Shown here piece by piece: positions 37,686 through 43,600 of a stretch of 64,000 nucleotides of DNA; within the stretch, counting starts at the first letter, position 1, and each line of letters begins with the position of its first letter. A model generated the notes under the pieces. It saw only the letters and a program-made list of their open reading frames with translations, made no database searches and was not told the origin of the DNA. Location: assembly GCA_021613535.1 (NCBI GenBank), contig CP075496.1, positions 11,966,001 through 12,030,000 on the forward strand, written 5' to 3'. Source of the DNA: Adineta vaga. Lineage: Eukaryota > Animalia > Rotifera. The translations under genes were made by a program, and so were the position numbers.

Positions 37686-40600
37686 ATGTCGAAAGCATAT
37701 AATTTCGATTGGCAAATTGAAGTATCAGGTCGTCTACTTAAAGGCGATTATTTTGATCGTTGGGATGAAGAAAATGGTACATTAGAACAAAACTGTTTAT
37801 TTCGTGTTGATAGCTATGGATTTTATATTTACTGGCAAAGTGAAGGACGTGATGGACAAGTTATTGAATTATCCCAAGTTAGCGATATACGGCCAGGAAA
37901 AGGTATTTCAACTCTATATTATTCATTTCACTACTTGTTTTTCTTTCTCATTGACTAGCTCCAACTGATACAAAAATTGCAAGTGATCTTATGGCTAATT
38001 CACTTGTTTATGGTCGTGGTAATATCGATGAACGAACAGTAACAATTTGTAGTGGGATTGATTTTGTTCAAATCAGTCATACTAATATAACCGGTGTCGA
38101 TCCTGCTACAGCAAAAGTAATGATAGGAAAACAAGATATATCGTAAACTTTCTATTTTTTTATCTTCTAGGCATGGATTGAAGGTCTAAGGAAAATTACG
38201 CATAATCACAAAGCAAACAATATATGTCCTACAACAATTTTACGCAAACAGTGAGTATTAAATTAAAATAAGTAACGAAATAATTATGTTTCTTTTGTTT
38301 TAGTTGGATGAAGTTGTCATTTATGTTGAATGTTAGTAAGAAAATTCCCGTACGAAGGTATGAAAGATAATCGGATTAAGGAGTAATTTAATTTCCTATC
38401 GATATTGCTTCTCTTTGTAGTATCAGTAAAACGTTTGCATCAGGTAAAACAGAAAAGCGTATCTTCGAAATCTTAAAAGAGCTTGGTTTACCCAGTGGAA
38501 AGGTAAGAGTCCTGATGAATATTTCTTTTTCGAAACATGTTTTTTTTTTCGTTTCGCGAAAATTTAGAACGATGAAATCGATCCAACTGATTTTACTTTT
38601 GAAAAATTTTGCGATCTATATCATAAGATCTGTCCTCGAACTGATATATCAGCGCTATTTGATGAATTATCAGGCGGAAAAGATTACATAACAACAAAAC
38701 AATTTGTTGAGTGGTTGAATGAAACACAACGTGATCCACGTTTAAATGAAATTCTTTTTCCACATTATGATACAAATAGTGCATTACGAATTATCGATCG
38801 ATATGAACTACGTGCTAACTATCAAGATCGTGGACATTTATCATGTGATGGTTTAACACGATATTTGATGTCGGATGAAAATGCTCCTGTTTTTCTCGAT
38901 CGCTTAGAAGTTTATCATGATATGGATCAACCAATGTGTCATTATTTAATTAATTCATCGCATAATACGTATTTACAAGGACGACAATTCGGTGGTCGAT
39001 CATCTGTGGAAATGTATCGGCAAGTTTTGTTAGCTGGTTGTCGTTGTATTGAATTGGATTGTTGGGATGGAAAAAATGATACTGAGCCAATCATTACACA
39101 TGGAAAAGCTATGTGTTCAGATATAAATTTTAAAGAAGTTGTTTATGCTATTCGAGATACAGCATTCGTTACAAGTGATTATCCGGTTATACTCTCTTTT
39201 GAAAATCATTGTTCGAAACCACAACAATTTAAATTAGCAAAATATTGTGAAGAAATTTTGGGCGATTATCTATTAACTAAACCATTAGATACTCATCCAG
39301 TATGTACAAAGAAAATCTTTCTTGAAAACTTGCTTCTTTGTCGAAATTTTAATTATTATTTTAGTATTGAGAAAACATTAAAAAAAAAAGAAAGAGTAAT
39401 TTTTTTTTCTCAAGATAAACTAACACTTGGTTTTCGTTTGTTGAGCTTCTTTGAATCAGATCAATTTTCTCTAATGAAATAACATGAGACTTTAAATTTT
39501 AGCTTGAACCTGGTGTACCATTACCATCACCCAATGCATTGAAAAGGAAAATTCTCATAAAAAATAAGCGATTAAAACTTGATGTTGAAAAAAGTAACAA
39601 AGACCTTCTTAGGAATCTTTTTTTTCCTATTATTTGTTTTTGTTTAGGACATCTTGAGTTATTTCTCAAAGGTCTCGATACCGAAGCAAATTATGATAAT
39701 GATTTAGACTCGGCTGCTAATGTCGAAGGCGAAGATGGACCCGCTACGTTTATTGATACAGTTAAATTACGCGAAGAAGATGATGAAGCTCATCCAGAAT
39801 TAAATGTTGATTCAAATGATGACGTTAATCGACGTAACATTACTCGGTCAATTAGGCATAAGATTTAAAGAAAAAACAAATCTTTCTCGTGAAGAAGAAG
39901 AAGCACTAATGAATCGTTATCAATATAAAGGTGCAACAACGAATATTCATCCATTATTATCTTCACGTGTTAATTATGCTCAGCCTATAAAATTTCCCGG
40001 TTTTTCTAAAGCTGAAGAACGCAACATTCATTATCATATGTCATCATTTTCGGAAAATGTTGCTCTACAACATTTAAGACAAAATCCCATTGAATTTGTT
40101 AATTATAATAAACGACAAATGTCACGTATATATCCTAAAGGTGGACGAGTTGATTCATCGAATTATATGCCACAAATCTTTTGGAACGCCGGTTGTCAAA
40201 TGGTTTCATTAAATTTTCAAACACCTGATCTTCCAATGCAATTAAACTTAGGCAAATTTGAATATAATGGAAATTGTGGGTAAGTGATGTGTTCTACTCG
40301 TATATCATCAGACGATATCTAATTAGTCTTGAAGATATATATTTATATCGTTATAGAATATAACAGGTGGTAAATGTCCTAAGAAAGATTTCTTCCGTAT
40401 GATGAAGGTCATACATACTATCCATCTGTTTATTGTTTATATTCGAGCATATTAATGAAAAAACGACTAATTTACTTGTCTGATTTATTTGCCAAGAGAA
40501 AAGAAAGAAAGAACGGAAAGAAGAGAAGAGAAGAGAAAAAAAGAAATCTTCCAATCAACTACTAGTAGTTTTAGAACATGCGATTGATTGCATTTGTTTC

Positions 40601-43600
40601 TGATGCTGAGCTATGATAAGTGCTATTGCTTGTTCACGTTGTTCTTGGACGGAAAGAGTAGACTCAATCATCGGAGGCAATGTTAATGGACGAAATAGAG
40701 AACTTTCAATCAGAGTTTGTAATTTTGCGTAGATAGAATTATTTAATGATAAATGTGAGAGAGTGATATGATTGGTTGTAATTAAATAATACTGTCCTTT
40801 CATACATTCATTCATTACGCTAGAACATGTCATTAAATTTGCTAATTGAAGACTTTTATCATATGTATGACGTAATTTCGTTTGAGGATGAATGCCAATA
40901 CAATCAAGCCAACATTGCGTTTGTTCATGATTATTAAATGGAACAAGCATAAATTCAATTTGTGCTAAATCAATTTCATCAACTAATAACATAGTATTTA
41001 TATCTTCAGTATAACCAATATAAAATGATGATTGTTTAAAAGAATAACGATCGTTTTTATCGAGAAATACTTTTGAATATTGATAGAAACGACTTAAGTG
41101 ATTGATTGTATTATGATTAAGATTATCTTCAGATATAGGAATGATTTGATGAGTAGAATCGAGTAATGCTAAATAACTCGATTTTTTTATATCTCCATCA
41201 GGTTTTCTCATAATAAAATCTCGTTTCGATGCTATGCGAATTAAATCATCGAATGTTTTCATAGAAGCTAATTCTTTATCAGTTGAACGATAGAAAAGTA
41301 GATAAAAACATCCATAAATAGGTATACCATAATATTTTTCATGTTCACATTCAATGAAAGATAAGATATTCGGATGAATTTCATGTGCATAAGTTATCTC
41401 ATTGCGATTAAGAATACATAACCATTGTTGTGATATGTAATAGTTTATATATAATGTATCATATATATAAACATCAAAATAATCCTGTGGTATCGTATGA
41501 TATCCTCCATCCCATTCATTTTCTGTTAGCCAATTTAAACGTACATATCGATTATTGAGAACGTTATACCAATAATGTTCAATTATTCGACAATAATCTT
41601 CTAAATGTTCACTTGATGCCCATGGATATAGACCTACATTTAATGTTATCTAGATAGATTGAAATATTTATTTCAAGAAACTTCATATCTCTTACAAAAT
41701 TTGATCCCGCTAGAAAATGATCTGATGATGATAATTCTTGTATTTGATGATTTTCATTTATATTGTCAGAATTTTGCATCATTCTATTGAATTGTTGAGA
41801 GAATAACACTTGAGATAAAAACAAAAATGATATCTATGCAAACATGCATACAAAATGAAGAATGATAGTGTAAAGAAGACTATTATCTATAGAATTTTTG
41901 TCATAAACATCATGTGATGTTTCATGCAACTGTTTTTCTGTTCTCTTTTTGGTCGTTTGAGATACAAAAGCCCGTTGGCAAAATTAATCAACGAACCTCA
42001 TTTTTGTTTGTACAAAATAGAACAGAATTGATTGATCGATAAGAATCCTTCTATTGACATATATGAAAAATTCATTAAATAAAAGAAAATAAAACAAAAA
42101 TAAAAAGAAATTTTTTATATTTAGCTACTTATTAAAACCGGATTTTATGCGTCGACCTGATCGAACATTTGATCCATATGCTGAGAGTCCAGTTGACGGT
42201 GTTATAGCCGCATTTTGTAGTGTTCGAGTGATATCAGGTCAATTTCTATCAGATAAGAAAATTGGTACATATGTTGAAGTTGATATGTATGGTTTACCAG
42301 CTGATACCATACGTAAAGAATATCGTACAAAAACAATACCAGCAAATGGACTTAACCCACGATATGATGAAAGTGTTTTTGAATTTCGAAAAGTAAACAT
42401 CAAAATTCATCGGAATTGAACTTTTAATTATGGCTTTTCTTTTTTCGTCTAGATTGTTCTTCCGGATTTAGCTATTTTACGTATTGCTGTTTATGAAGAA
42501 ACAGGTAAACTCATTGGTCAACGTGTTTTACCATTAGATGGTTTACAAGCAGGTTATCGACATATCTCCTTACGTACTGAAGGAAATTTTCCTTTATCAT
42601 TACCAACAATTTTTTGTCAAATTATTCTAAAATCTTATGTCCCTGATGGTTTAAGTGCATTTGTTGATCAATTAAATCAACCATTATTAATGAAGAAGAC
42701 TGAAGATCTATTAAATGTATCTATTACGAATTCATCTGACGGTGGTCCAAATTCAAGTAGTTCATCTATTCGACGCGTCCGTGCAACTGATTCCACGTCC
42801 ACATCAACACCTTCATTAGATTCCAAAGTTACTACAACATCACTTGGTGCTAGTAGTATATCAACCACTACTGTTTCAACGACTGATACAACGAATCTTG
42901 CTTCATCATCTACGAAACCTAAGACTCCAGTTGAAACAATTATTCCAATAACATTAGAATATTTACGTGAACAGAAAAGTTTTTGTAAATTAAAATCTAA
43001 ACAAGATAAAGAATTAATTTTAATGAAAAAGAAACATGCCAAAGAACAGACAACACTTGGCGAACAACAATCAAAAACGATGAGTAAAGCAAAAGCGGAT
43101 TGTGAAAAATTAACACGATCACCAATGCTCAGTAGTGCGAATGTCCGAAAAGATTTGAGGTAAATATTCAGAGAAGAAAATCCTTTATATATTTACAGTA
43201 ATTTTTATACAGTTATGTTATTTTCTTGCTACTTCTTAAGCTTTTTTTCGCATCGCTTATTTAAACCATTCATGTTAAGGTATTTCCTTTTGTTTCTTGC
43301 TGCTCTACTAATCATAACTAATGAAAATTCTTTTCTTCTGCTGATTTTCTAATGATATTTATGTATCTTTCTTTTAGCAATGGTGGTAATCTAATTGCAG
43401 TTAGAAACGATCCTAAAGTAAATGAAAAGATTTTGAAGAAAAAACAACGAACTTTTTTTCTCTCAATTAGTTAATGGATTTAATCAATGAACAAAATGTT
43501 GAATGGACAACACTTGTTCAAAGGCAATTAATTGAAATGAATACACTTCGACGACAACATACAAAAGAACAATGTGATTTATTACGTCTTTTACTTGATG

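Follow-up and report, generated by a model that had tools for sequence, protein, structure and literature searches.

Described thiaminase I enzymes and foreign genes of bdelloids

Solved structures of thiaminase I (thiamine pyridinylase, EC 2.5.1.2) include those of the bacteria Paenibacillus thiaminolyticus (PDB 2THI, 3THI and 4THI) and Clostridium botulinum (4KYS) and of the protist Naegleria gruberi (4HCW). The nucleophile, Cys113 in 2THI and Cys143 in 4KYS, lies in a G-x-P-x-x-x-C motif; the pyrimidine site of 2THI is formed by Asp64, Tyr50, Tyr270 and Asp272, in the numbering of the 1998 structure paper. A 2017 paper named N. gruberi as the sole eukaryote confirmed to produce thiaminase I (PMC5627462). 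CcThi1 of Corallococcus, less than 20% identical to both 2THI and 4KYS, is an active thiaminase I that uses the same Cys/Glu pair (PMC10499793). An animal-encoded thiaminase I activity has been described for a zebrafish TenA-like protein (Richter et al. 2023; PMC9839694). The fold of the fish enzyme is TenA-like, or thiaminase II-like, and is unrelated to the binding-protein type described here.

In the bdelloid rotifer Adineta ricciae, 7 of 9 EC numbers of thiamine metabolism came from alien transcripts (PMC3499245). Among the horizontal transfer candidates that A. vaga up-regulates as it enters desiccation, the term "thiamine pyridinylase activity" is listed (2 of 6 genes, FDR 0.027; PMC11258130 Supplementary Data 5), with identifiers that may belong to any of three loci. 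GO-annotated candidates of this kind are thus already in published supplementary tables; the published lists give no account of the present gene, its nesting or its structure. We analysed a window of 64,000 nucleotides of A. vaga contig CP075496.1 and describe a gene in it that, judged from sequence comparison, probably derives, by horizontal acquisition, from a thiaminase I of the BcmE/TIGR04541 lineage and is predicted to encode a Cys-dependent enzyme. It follows a pattern common among bdelloid horizontally acquired genes, namely a non-metazoan enzyme gene that has gained introns, has host-like composition and is expressed. Many foreign genes of bdelloids are subtelomeric, whereas this one lies inside a conserved metazoan gene.

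A two-exon gene nested in a PLC-beta intron

The thiaminase-I-like gene lies antisense inside an intron of a PLC-beta gene, between the exons for PI-PLC-Y and the C2 domain. PH_14, PLCB1-4-like EF-hand, PI-PLC-X and PLC-beta_C domains were found elsewhere in the host gene. The features of the locus, in window coordinates, are as follows.

39648 to 40279, plus strand: PI-PLC-Y host exon (PF00387, E 2.6e-38; splice joints at 39648 and 40279)
40280 to 42124, plus strand: PLC-beta host intron, 1,845 nt (splice joint in runs X1 and X15)
42125 to 42392, plus strand: host exon, start of the C2 domain (PF00168, E 2.2e-4; joints at 42124/5 and 42392)
41783 to 41822, minus strand: minimal 5' untranslated region (RNA-like contigs reach 41810 in X15 and 41822 in X1)
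41696 to 41782, minus strand: coding exon 1, translated as 29 hydrophilic residues with two tandem ATGs
41650 to 41695, minus strand: spliceosomal intron, 46 nt, GTAAGA...TCTAG (contig splice and conservation)
40555 to 41649, minus strand: coding exon 2, an open frame of 364 codons plus a TGA stop (40555-40557)
40462 to 40554, minus strand: 3' untranslated region with AATAAA at 40489-40484 (end of an X15 contig)

The original prediction, a two-exon gene of about 390 residues in the 1.84-kb intron 40280-42124, was borne out: 29 and 364 codons join to give a 393-residue product. So were its further claims of a 46-nt GT-AG intron at 41695-41650, an AG one base ahead of the ATG (at 41785-41784), host-like AT content (GC is 29.0% in the gene and 30.3% in the window) and the lack of a signal peptide. 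The host intron measures 1,845 nt against 54 and 60 nt for the adjoining introns of the PLC-beta gene.

Exon 2 encodes the whole of the thiaminase-I-like binding-protein fold. No hydrophobic signal-like stretch was found in the translation of exon 1 (41696 to 41782); where the bacterial enzymes carry a signal or lipoprotein leader of 24-63 residues, the A. vaga protein has this non-homologous hydrophilic exon. A. ricciae, A. steineri and three bdelloid contigs encode homologous exon-1 peptides with the phase-0 junction kept, and the donor and acceptor of the 46-nt intron lie at the identical site in five other lineages. Failure to splice this intron gives a frameshift (ORF 41609-41824). In two runs, a variant at 41780 (C>G) abolishes the first ATG and leaves the second. 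The 6-contig genome of A. vaga has a single copy of the gene, for which the public gene call (P0009) gives a fragment of 235 residues beginning at Met130; the A. ricciae and A. steineri homologues are filed as uncharacterized proteins with no Pfam domain.

Homology to thiaminase I

The exon-2 product matched the TIGR04541 profile with an E-value of 1.4e-28 and 99.9 bits over profile positions 28-365 of 381, far beyond chance, and matched the thiaminase I sequences 2THI, 3THI, 4THI and 4KYS in the PDB at E ~6e-10. The 175-bit cut-off of TIGR04541 (thiaminase_BcmE, an equivalog model) was not reached by the window protein; other bdelloid homologues scored 101-116 bits and bacterial relatives 332-373 bits. 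The protein is therefore treated as a divergent homologue and not as an equivalog. The Pfam Thiaminase-1 domain PF22141 gave no match to the window protein at E up to 1, nor to P0001 and P0016 at E up to 0.01; bacterial relatives match it at 128-226 bits. This model describes the central domain, a region that is ~25 residues shorter in the bdelloid protein. Identity of the A. vaga protein to the bacterial enzymes of known structure is 21-24%, and to the Naegleria enzyme, which is not nearest in sequence searches, 16%.

Conservation and origin

Among 1.84 billion protein representatives there were only 97 matches. Relatives found in this set and in one of 5.8 billion proteins were exclusively bdelloid-like or bacterial, apart from one ciliate transcript; these searches covered the genomes of other rotifers at most indirectly. 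The bdelloid sequences fall into a single clade (SH-aLRT 100) whose stem is 1.3-1.65 substitutions per site long. The comparisons support the horizontal acquisition that had been proposed, and the description "bacterial-type" is fair. "From bacteria" would go too far, because the trees pin neither the donor lineage nor the place of the bdelloid clade among bacteria.

The bdelloid gene could instead have come from another eukaryote, or it could represent an old line of thiaminase I without signal peptides that survives patchily in eukaryotes. Three trees put the bdelloid clade next to a transcript from the ciliate Metopus es (EukProt; 378 residues), with SH-aLRT of 90-97. This transcript has no signal peptide either: it begins with the mature domain, and its spacing between the Cys and the acid is shortened, to 108 residues; Naegleria, too, has a thiaminase I. 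However, the ciliate branch (1.5-2.4 substitutions per site) and the bdelloid stem are both very long, and the tree tool therefore flagged their junction as possible long-branch attraction. Moreover, the identity to the ciliate sequence is 22%, below that to several bacterial proteins (30-35%), every other relative is bacterial, and a ciliate transcriptome may contain sequences of bacteria or prey. We regard a eukaryotic source as unlikely. Of the profile and phylogeny on which the original prediction was to be judged, then, the family match stood, with a score below the equivalog cut-off, and the trees placed the bdelloid clade beside a long ciliate branch.

Whatever the donor of the foreign gene, its domestication by the host is supported by the intron and the recruited 5' exon, the host-like GC content, a dN/dS of ~0.18 (0.14/0.76) between A. 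vaga and A. ricciae, and a shared nested position, in agreement with what had been proposed. An open frame is kept in 13 full-length homologues of 58-75% identity. The antisense placement between PI-PLC-Y and PLC-beta_C is identical in seven bdelloid lineages, three independently assembled Adineta species among them.

The A. vaga genome also contains a second family, comprising two secreted thiaminase-I-like genes that are single-exon and have signal peptides, one of them with a GPI-like tail. These belong to the same superfamily, share the Cys and Glu motifs and score 44-48 bits against TIGR04541. They, too, are of foreign origin, and their nearest relatives are binding-protein-like proteins of myxobacteria (30-33% identity). 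The window protein could not be aligned to this family by BLASTP (E 0.28). A common bdelloid clade of both families was rejected (p-AU 0.0014), and the second family therefore represents a separate acquisition.

Predicted structure and active site

An AlphaFold (AF2) model of the protein was obtained with a pLDDT of 88.9 and a pTM of 0.89. The modelled fold is of the two-lobed periplasmic-binding-protein kind, and the solved thiaminase I structures come closest to it. The four best Foldseek matches were all thiaminase I (TM 0.77, 0.77, 0.75 and 0.68), with 4KYS, 3THI and 4HCW first; the E-value then rose from 1e-13 to 1e-11 for PotF and PotD. Alignment with VIA-align gave Z-scores of 35.2 for 4KYS (2.5 Å over 330 residues), 34.1 for 3THI and 29.4 for 4HCW, and the rmsd to the bacterial enzymes was 2.4-2.5 Å over ~330 residues. 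Transport binding proteins reached Z ≤24.8 at ~4 Å. Hence the best matches in both sequence and structure are thiaminase I with the Cys and Glu aligned, and not solute-binding proteins. A C-terminal helix predicted at residues 334-362 is specific to bdelloids and stands where many bacterial relatives have an MVL lectin domain.

The two putative catalytic residues are encoded at the positions named in the original prediction.

41308 to 41310, minus strand: codon of the predicted nucleophile Cys (exon-2 residue 114, residue 143 of the two-exon model)
41005 to 41007, minus strand: codon of the predicted general-base Glu (exon-2 residue 215, model residue 244)

Cys114 aligns to Cys113 of 2THI (YGIPIYGC versus YGLPQILC), and Glu215 to Glu241 (IGYTE versus IGYSE) in a G-[YF]-[ST]-E motif. 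At the nucleophile position each of the 13 full-length bdelloid homologues has a Cys, as do 34 of 38 relatives from outside the bdelloids (alignment A2), and Glu215 is invariant across the same 13 bdelloid proteins. The few columns that are near-invariant family-wide include Cys114, Glu215, Asp64, Tyr50, Trp46 and Asp47. The claim that the Tyr and Asp motifs of the substrate site are kept was upheld: Asp64, Tyr50 and Asp249 align to the pyrimidine-site residues of 2THI, the last to Asp272, and Trp247 stands in place of Tyr270. There are ~25 fewer residues between the Cys and the Glu, with gaps after residues 150, 171 and 201, and the substrate specificity may therefore have changed.

Some of these features would suit a pseudoenzyme that has kept the thiaminase I fold and lost thiamine cleavage, and would instead bind or sense thiamine, a pyrimidine or another small molecule inside the cell. 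The sub-threshold family scores, including the missing PF22141 match, and the deletion in the lobe between the Cys and the Glu point in this direction, as do the replacement of Asp249 by Asn in 4 of the 13 bdelloid homologues and the descent of the fold itself from that of binding proteins. Nevertheless, the Cys and Glu are strictly conserved even though synonymous sites are saturated across the lineages, the family-wide cleft residues Asp64, Tyr50, Trp46 and Asp47 are conserved with them, and the structure is much nearer to the enzymes than to the binders. Loss of catalysis consequently seems distinctly improbable.

Transcripts and linkage to the host gene

The RNA data are assembled contigs of runs presumed to be RNA, which do not give strand or expression level. 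The gene is covered in three such runs from three studies. A contig of X15 joins 41649 to 41696 and skips the 46 nt (CT..AC on the plus strand, GT..AG on the minus strand), which is the junction predicted. A contig of X15 ends at 40462, ~22 nt past the AATAAA; since it is an assembled sequence, this 3' end is approximate. In X1 and X15 the PLC-beta transcripts splice 40278/9 to 42124/5 (GT..AG), and the plus-strand boundaries TGTGG|GTAAGT ... TTAG|CTACTTA are joined such that a PLC motif of 14 residues is restored. A DNA-like contig of 2,210 nt from another data set runs unbroken from 40181 to 42390, so that the insert is joined to both PLC exons, at a depth equal to that of its neighbours.

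Because the gene is wholly inside the host intron, host pre-mRNA covers it, and the RNA might be a by-product of PLC-beta transcription over a decaying remnant that makes no functional protein. In one run all contigs retain the 46-nt intron and may stem from PLC-beta pre-mRNA; the truncated public gene call would also fit. Yet the small intron is GT..AG on the minus strand alone and host pre-mRNA could not yield its splice, a polyadenylation signal stands just ahead of the contig end, and the frame is intact in all full-length homologues at a low dN/dS; a remnant is very improbable. Bacterial contamination or misassembly, in favour of which nothing was found, was rejected on the DNA contig spanning both PLC exons at neighbour-like depth, and the precise splicing of PLC-beta around the insert, the spliceosomal intron and GC of 29%, and the identical synteny in seven lineages reduce its probability to almost nothing. 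The locus is thus confirmed as a real, expressed, nuclear gene of A. vaga. Of the outcomes named beforehand as refuting, neither best matches to solute-binding proteins, nor a missing transcript, nor a break between the insert and the PLC exons was seen. Nesting in PLC-beta had been offered as an argument against contamination, and the insert is joined in DNA to this bona fide host gene, as a gene that was acquired by horizontal transfer and became fixed in a metazoan should be.

Proposed history and function

We propose that a foreign thiaminase I gene lost its secretion signal and was inserted into, or enlarged, one PLC-beta intron on the opposite strand. It would then have gained a polyadenylation signal and, at its 5' end, a short coding exon set off by a spliceosomal intron, its base composition would have shifted to that of the host, and purifying selection would have retained it in seven or more bdelloid lineages. 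The gene differs from those of bacterial thiaminase I in being animal, nuclear and intron-bearing.

The product is most likely an intracellular, Cys-dependent pyrimidine-transfer enzyme. By the mechanism we envisage, Glu215 would deprotonate Cys114, and the resulting thiolate would attack thiamine, or a close analogue, at C6 of its aminopyrimidine ring; the thiazole would depart, and a second nucleophile would accept the pyrimidine-methyl group. A thiamine-destroying enzyme in the cytosol, its probable location, would be physiologically awkward in an animal unable to make thiamine. A ThiE able to rebuild thiamine from its fragments was looked for and none was found. The same candidate roles arise for the rotifer gene as for the fish thiaminase I, namely defence, detoxification of analogues and salvage. 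For the family as a whole, the precedent of CcThi1 shows that even very divergent members can be active through the Cys/Glu pair.

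The gene in the PLC-beta intron

The thiaminase-I-like gene lies within contig 4 (window 11,966,001-12,030,000) of the 100.8-Mb, six-contig A. vaga genome and is made up as follows.

41782-41696, minus strand: exon 1, 29 hydrophilic residues, starting with two Met codons (translation)
Between 41696 and 41649, minus strand: small intron of 46 nt, starting with GTAAGA and ending with TCTAG (sequence and a spliced contig)
41649-40555, minus strand: exon 2, a single open frame of 364 codons ending in TGA (translation)

The ORF listing contains only fragments of this gene, including a 235-codon piece starting at Met130, because the first in-frame ATG of exon 2 is that of residue 130. 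On the plus strand, the upstream host exon encodes a PI-PLC-Y domain (Pfam, E = 2.6e-38) ending at 40279, and the downstream exon, which starts at 42125, encodes a C2 domain. The PLC motif is restored across the junction TGTGG/GTAAGT...TTAG/CTAC. Other host exons encode PH_14, PLCB1-4-type EF-hand, EF-hand-like and PI-PLC-X domains and, weakly, PLC-beta_C, and this domain set identifies the host gene as a PLC-beta. The host intron is about 30 times as long as its neighbors. The original prediction had placed a bacterial-type thiaminase I gene antisense in this intron. Re-reading of the sequence confirmed that observation and found all of its coordinates to be correct, including those of the Cys and Glu codons.

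The neighboring gene at 34435-35514 on the minus strand encodes a conserved protein of 360 residues that has a hydrophobic anchor at its N-terminus and belongs to no Pfam family. Its place beside PLC-beta is shared by A. ricciae (69% identity) and by a bdelloid contig from a metagenome (56%). It was tested as a thiaminase paralogue and found to be unrelated.

Sequence and fold similarity to thiaminase I

All searches and the fold prediction were carried out with exon 2 alone; exon 1 was translated only. A Pfam scan returned SBP_bac_8 as the sole match, at a sub-threshold E-value of 0.15. The transport binding protein suggested by Pfam alone was overturned by the NCBIfam, PDB and fold searches. 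In NCBIfam the protein matched TIGR04541 (thiaminase_BcmE) over nearly the full profile with an E-value of 1.4e-28 and a score of 99.9 bits, which is below the 175-bit equivalog cut-off. A phmmer search of PDB sequences detected thiaminase I only, namely the Paenibacillus structures 2THI, 3THI and 4THI (E around 6e-10) and the Clostridium botulinum structure 4KYS (E = 2e-8). Cys114 aligns with the nucleophile Cys113, and Glu215 with the base Glu241, of the Paenibacillus enzyme. Asp64, Tyr50 and Asp272 of that enzyme are also matched; the roles of residues beyond the Cys and Glu are those we presume from the alignment. Near-invariant columns of a 51-sequence family alignment include Trp46, Asp47, Tyr50, Asp59, Asp64, Cys114 and Glu215.

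An AlphaFold2 model built from the same 51-sequence alignment had a pLDDT of 88.9 and a pTM of 0.89. Foldseek placed thiaminase I from C. botulinum, P. thiaminolyticus and Naegleria at the top (TM-scores of 0.77, 0.75 and 0.68), followed after a gap by polyamine and sugar binding proteins. VIA-align gave Z-scores of 35.2, 34.1 and 29.4 at 2.4-3.1 Å for thiaminase I, with transport proteins at Z-scores of 24.8 or less and about 4 Å. The best matches are thus thiaminase I with the Cys and Glu residues aligned, and not non-catalytic binding proteins, which supports the thiaminase homology that had been proposed for this gene.

Transcription, splicing and linkage to the host gene

Contigs assembled from four public sequencing runs were placed on window positions 39500-42700. 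This evidence consists of contigs rather than reads; it yields the strand only through the splice-site argument, and transcript ends taken from it are approximate. In run X15 a 573-nt contig comprises 41192-41649 joined to 41696-41810, skipping exactly the predicted 46 nt. The splice ends read CT..AC on the plus strand, equivalent to GT..AG on the minus strand, and so only a minus-strand transcript can yield this splice. A second X15 contig stops at 40462, around 22 nt past an AATAAA motif (40489-40484), and run X5, from a different study, covers 40550-41432.

Splicing of PLC-beta across the 1,845-nt intron, as well as of the adjacent 54- and 60-nt introns, was seen in runs X1 and X15 and marks both as RNA. 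Run X12, which behaves as DNA, gave an unbroken 2,210-nt contig (40181-42390) at the same depth as its surroundings, linking both PLC exons to the insert. The X1 contigs over the window gene are of low depth and all retain the 46-nt intron; they may represent PLC-beta pre-mRNA. Retention of the intron shifts the frame, and splicing is therefore required for the protein. In runs X1 and X12 a plus-strand C>G variant at window position 41780 turns the first ATG of the gene into ATC. The second, adjacent ATG is intact, so that the protein of that haplotype or strain would be one residue shorter.

The 5' exon

The exon 1 peptide (consensus M-Q...Q-x-L/V-S-S-P-x-I/N-F...) and the phase-0 GTAAGA..TCTAG intron were found in six lineages. 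The first codon of exon 2 is still ATG in three bdelloid contigs from metagenome assemblies (L004, L014 and L015) and is Ile, Val or Ala in A. vaga, A. ricciae, A. steineri and a fourth such contig, L005, making exon 1 obligatory in the latter group. In L004 an exon-1-like frame is recognizable (L004:7800-8003), but the GT donor is gone and the frame ends in a stop codon. Because the donor is lost, the exon 2 ATG must be used, and the L004 lineage has reverted to a single-exon gene. It is the only lineage to show donor loss. Alignment A1, in which other homologues start with Met at the exon 2 boundary, had indicated that the 5' exon was confined to Adineta; this was dropped because the upstream DNA of L005, L014 and L015 contains the exon 1 peptide and intron. 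The codon pattern fits a sequence of events in which a leaderless foreign ORF would first have used its own ATG and gained the 5' exon afterwards.

Differences from known thiaminase I

The bacterial relatives score 128-226 bits with the Pfam Thiaminase-1 family (PF22141), which the bdelloid proteins do not match, and 332-373 bits with TIGR04541, compared with 100-116 bits for the bdelloid proteins. The spacing between the catalytic Cys and Glu is 94-101 residues in bdelloids and 119-129 residues in nearly all other relatives, the sole outlier among the non-bdelloids being a ciliate transcript with 108 residues. The bdelloid deletions are located after residues 150, 171 and 201. All bacterial relatives have 24-63 extra N-terminal residues (leaders), whereas the bdelloid protein has none, or has the unrelated hydrophilic exon 1. 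Only the bdelloid clade has a conserved helix at the C-terminus (residues 334-362), and Asp249 is replaced by Asn in four relatives.

As judged from its sequence, the window protein is a divergent homologue with the predicted catalytic dyad intact, and not an equivalog. The Corallococcus protein CcThi1, although less than 20% identical to either 2THI or 4KYS, has thiaminase I activity that depends on the same Cys/Glu pair (PMC10499793). By this precedent, the divergence of the bdelloid protein is compatible with activity.

Relatives and evolutionary history

Among its relatives, the window gene is closest to those of A. ricciae (75% identity) and A. steineri (70%). A word-indexed search of 5.8 billion proteins retrieved 22 close relatives at 55-75% identity and then only proteins at 26-28% identity that contain PF22141. 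An exhaustive HMMER scan of 1.84 billion representatives gave 97 hits in total, and a profile search gave 172 hits at E ≤ 1e-5. All named non-rotifer matches were bacterial thiamine pyridinylases, with the single exception of a transcript from the ciliate Metopus es. The bacterial sources include Xenorhabdus, cyanobacteria, Acidobacteriota, Phycisphaerae, and alpha- and gammaproteobacteria.

The 15 bdelloid sequences group into a single clade (SH-aLRT 100), whose stem measures 1.3-1.65 substitutions per site. This clade joins an equally long ciliate branch (support 90-97), and none of three trees, one of them a quick PMSF tree, has a resolved bacterial sister to it. The join with the ciliate is possibly long-branch attraction, as flagged by the tree tool. 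The ciliate sequence (P0058, from the EukProt transcriptome of the anaerobic M. es) is a leaderless thiaminase-I-like protein of 378 residues that retains the Cys and has Asp at the Glu column; it is nearest to the bdelloid clade in the trees, with both branches very long.

In A. ricciae, A. steineri and four contigs from metagenome assemblies, the gene is likewise antisense and flanked by the PI-PLC-Y and PLC-beta_C exons, and those contigs have the neighbors MRP-L51, Got1, galactosyltransferase and SIR2 in common as well. With A. vaga, this amounts to one insertion site in seven lineages and hence to a single old insertion. Protein searches found no homologue of the window gene in Rotaria or Didymodactylos, both of whose proteomes appear for the second family described below; the gene may be absent there, or may have been overlooked owing to its nesting. 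Between A. vaga and A. ricciae, dN/dS is 0.14/0.76 (NG86). In more distant pairs the synonymous sites are saturated and dN is still 0.25-0.35. The GC content of the gene is 29.0%, compared with 30.3% for the window.

A second thiaminase-I-like family and other thiamine genes

A family search of the A. vaga genome identified three thiaminase-I-like loci, comprising the window gene and two others.

L011:718-2139 (contig 3, about 10,403,932-10,405,353), minus strand: single exon, 473 residues, thiaminase-I-like
L012:796-2118 (contig 1, about 15,618,466-15,619,788), minus strand: single exon, 440 residues with a signal peptide, thiaminase-I-like

The L011 protein starts with a signal-like segment, contains numerous N-x-S/T sites and ends in a hydrophobic tail of GPI-like type; the Cys (HLMCGYF) and Glu (FGYSE) motifs are retained. 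The L012 protein is 100% identical to an A. vaga 'hypothetical protein'. Both have signal peptides, retain the Cys and G-Y-S-E motifs, and score 44-48 bits with TIGR04541. Their family is widespread in Adineta and Rotaria; beyond the rotifers, the proteins closest to it are myxobacterial 'extracellular solute-binding proteins' (30-33% identity). BLASTP between the two bdelloid families gave an E-value of 0.28. A single bdelloid clade was rejected by the AU test (log-likelihood difference 100.6, p = 0.0014), and bdelloids therefore have two independently derived thiaminase-I-like families.

An intron-containing THI20-like gene is located about 2.9 Mb from the window gene.

9,094,937-9,096,289 of contig 4 (L007, L008, L009), plus strand: ThiD-type hydroxymethylpyrimidine kinase (PF08543) joined to TenA/thiaminase II (PF03070, E = 1.7e-42)

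Such a ThiD-TenA fusion is unusual for an animal. ThiE was not found in the A. vaga genome with two models, and a ThiM search of the genome gave one family match only and no true member. The locus L006:872-1896 (contig 2, about 14,448,566-14,449,590), considered as ThiM/thiazole kinase, is instead a two-exon NAD(P)HX-dehydratase-like carbohydrate-kinase gene. A complete thiamine-rebuilding route is thus unsupported, with no ThiE and no true ThiM, though ThiD-TenA is present.

Nowell et al. 2024 (PMC11258130) assigned the GO label 'thiamine pyridinylase activity' to six genes of their diploid A. vaga set, a number that fits the three haploid loci found here. Two of the six (AVAG|g5953 and g18629) are horizontal transfer candidates upregulated on desiccation entry (FDR of 0.027, which is above the paper's own threshold of FDR < 0.001); they are given per gene id and could be any of the three loci. 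One GO-labeled gene is present in the pathogen set of the same study (p = 0.03, not significant after correction). For A. ricciae, Boschetti et al. 2012 (PMC3499245) assigned seven of the nine EC numbers of thiamine metabolism to alien transcripts. Published candidate lists have already hinted at genes of this kind; our literature search found no paper with both 'thiaminase' and 'bdelloid' in the main text.

DISCUSSION

The window gene very probably encodes a functional thiaminase I homologue under selection, and we lean towards cleavage of thiamine-like substrates as its predicted reaction. Taking these two estimates together, it is likely that the protein is an intracellular Cys/Glu thiaminase-I-type transferase acting on thiamine or close analogues, and the interpretation originally offered for the gene is supported. 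Possible roles are antivitamin detoxification, controlled thiamine turnover on desiccation entry, base-exchange salvage and consumer deterrence. The lack of ThiE counts against a classical route in which thiamine is rebuilt from fragments.

A more speculative scheme, which we regard as unlikely to hold in all its components, would join the two recruitments of thiaminase I into an animal-encoded system for manipulating vitamin B1. Bdelloids would have taken up thiaminase I twice, from different donors. One form would have stayed secreted or surface-bound, and the window gene would have moved to the cytosol through loss of its leader and gain of a new 5' exon. The outer enzymes could starve thiamine-dependent parasites or competitors, and the intracellular enzyme could destroy thiamine antivitamins or, alternatively, use base exchange to reshape or recover the thiamine pool on desiccation entry. 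On the same chromosome, the THI20-like ThiD-TenA gene might cooperate with the intracellular enzyme.

To the best of our knowledge, the only animal gene so far tied to thiaminase I activity is that of the fish TenA-like enzyme, which differs in fold from the binding-protein-type thiaminase I. Reports of thiaminase I activity in animals go back a long time, and eating thiaminase-containing organisms can cause thiamine deficiency (PMC9839694). According to a 2017 genome paper, production of the binding-protein-type enzyme was confirmed only for microbes and for the amoeba Naegleria (PMC5627462). The window gene and its two secreted cousins would be the first thiaminase I genes of the binding-protein type to be genetically defined in an animal, and the species is culturable, with RNA-seq and genome resources available. 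What appears to be new is an animal member of the thiaminase I family that is structurally trimmed and has no leader, with activity predicted from its sequence.

Bdelloids are already known to have acquired genes horizontally on a massive scale. Within this well-known acquisition of genes, the window gene is a particularly clear nested domestication, in which the naturalization of a foreign gene is marked by loss of the leader, gain of a 5' exon and intron conserved across lineages, nesting in a conserved host intron, and upkeep by purifying selection.
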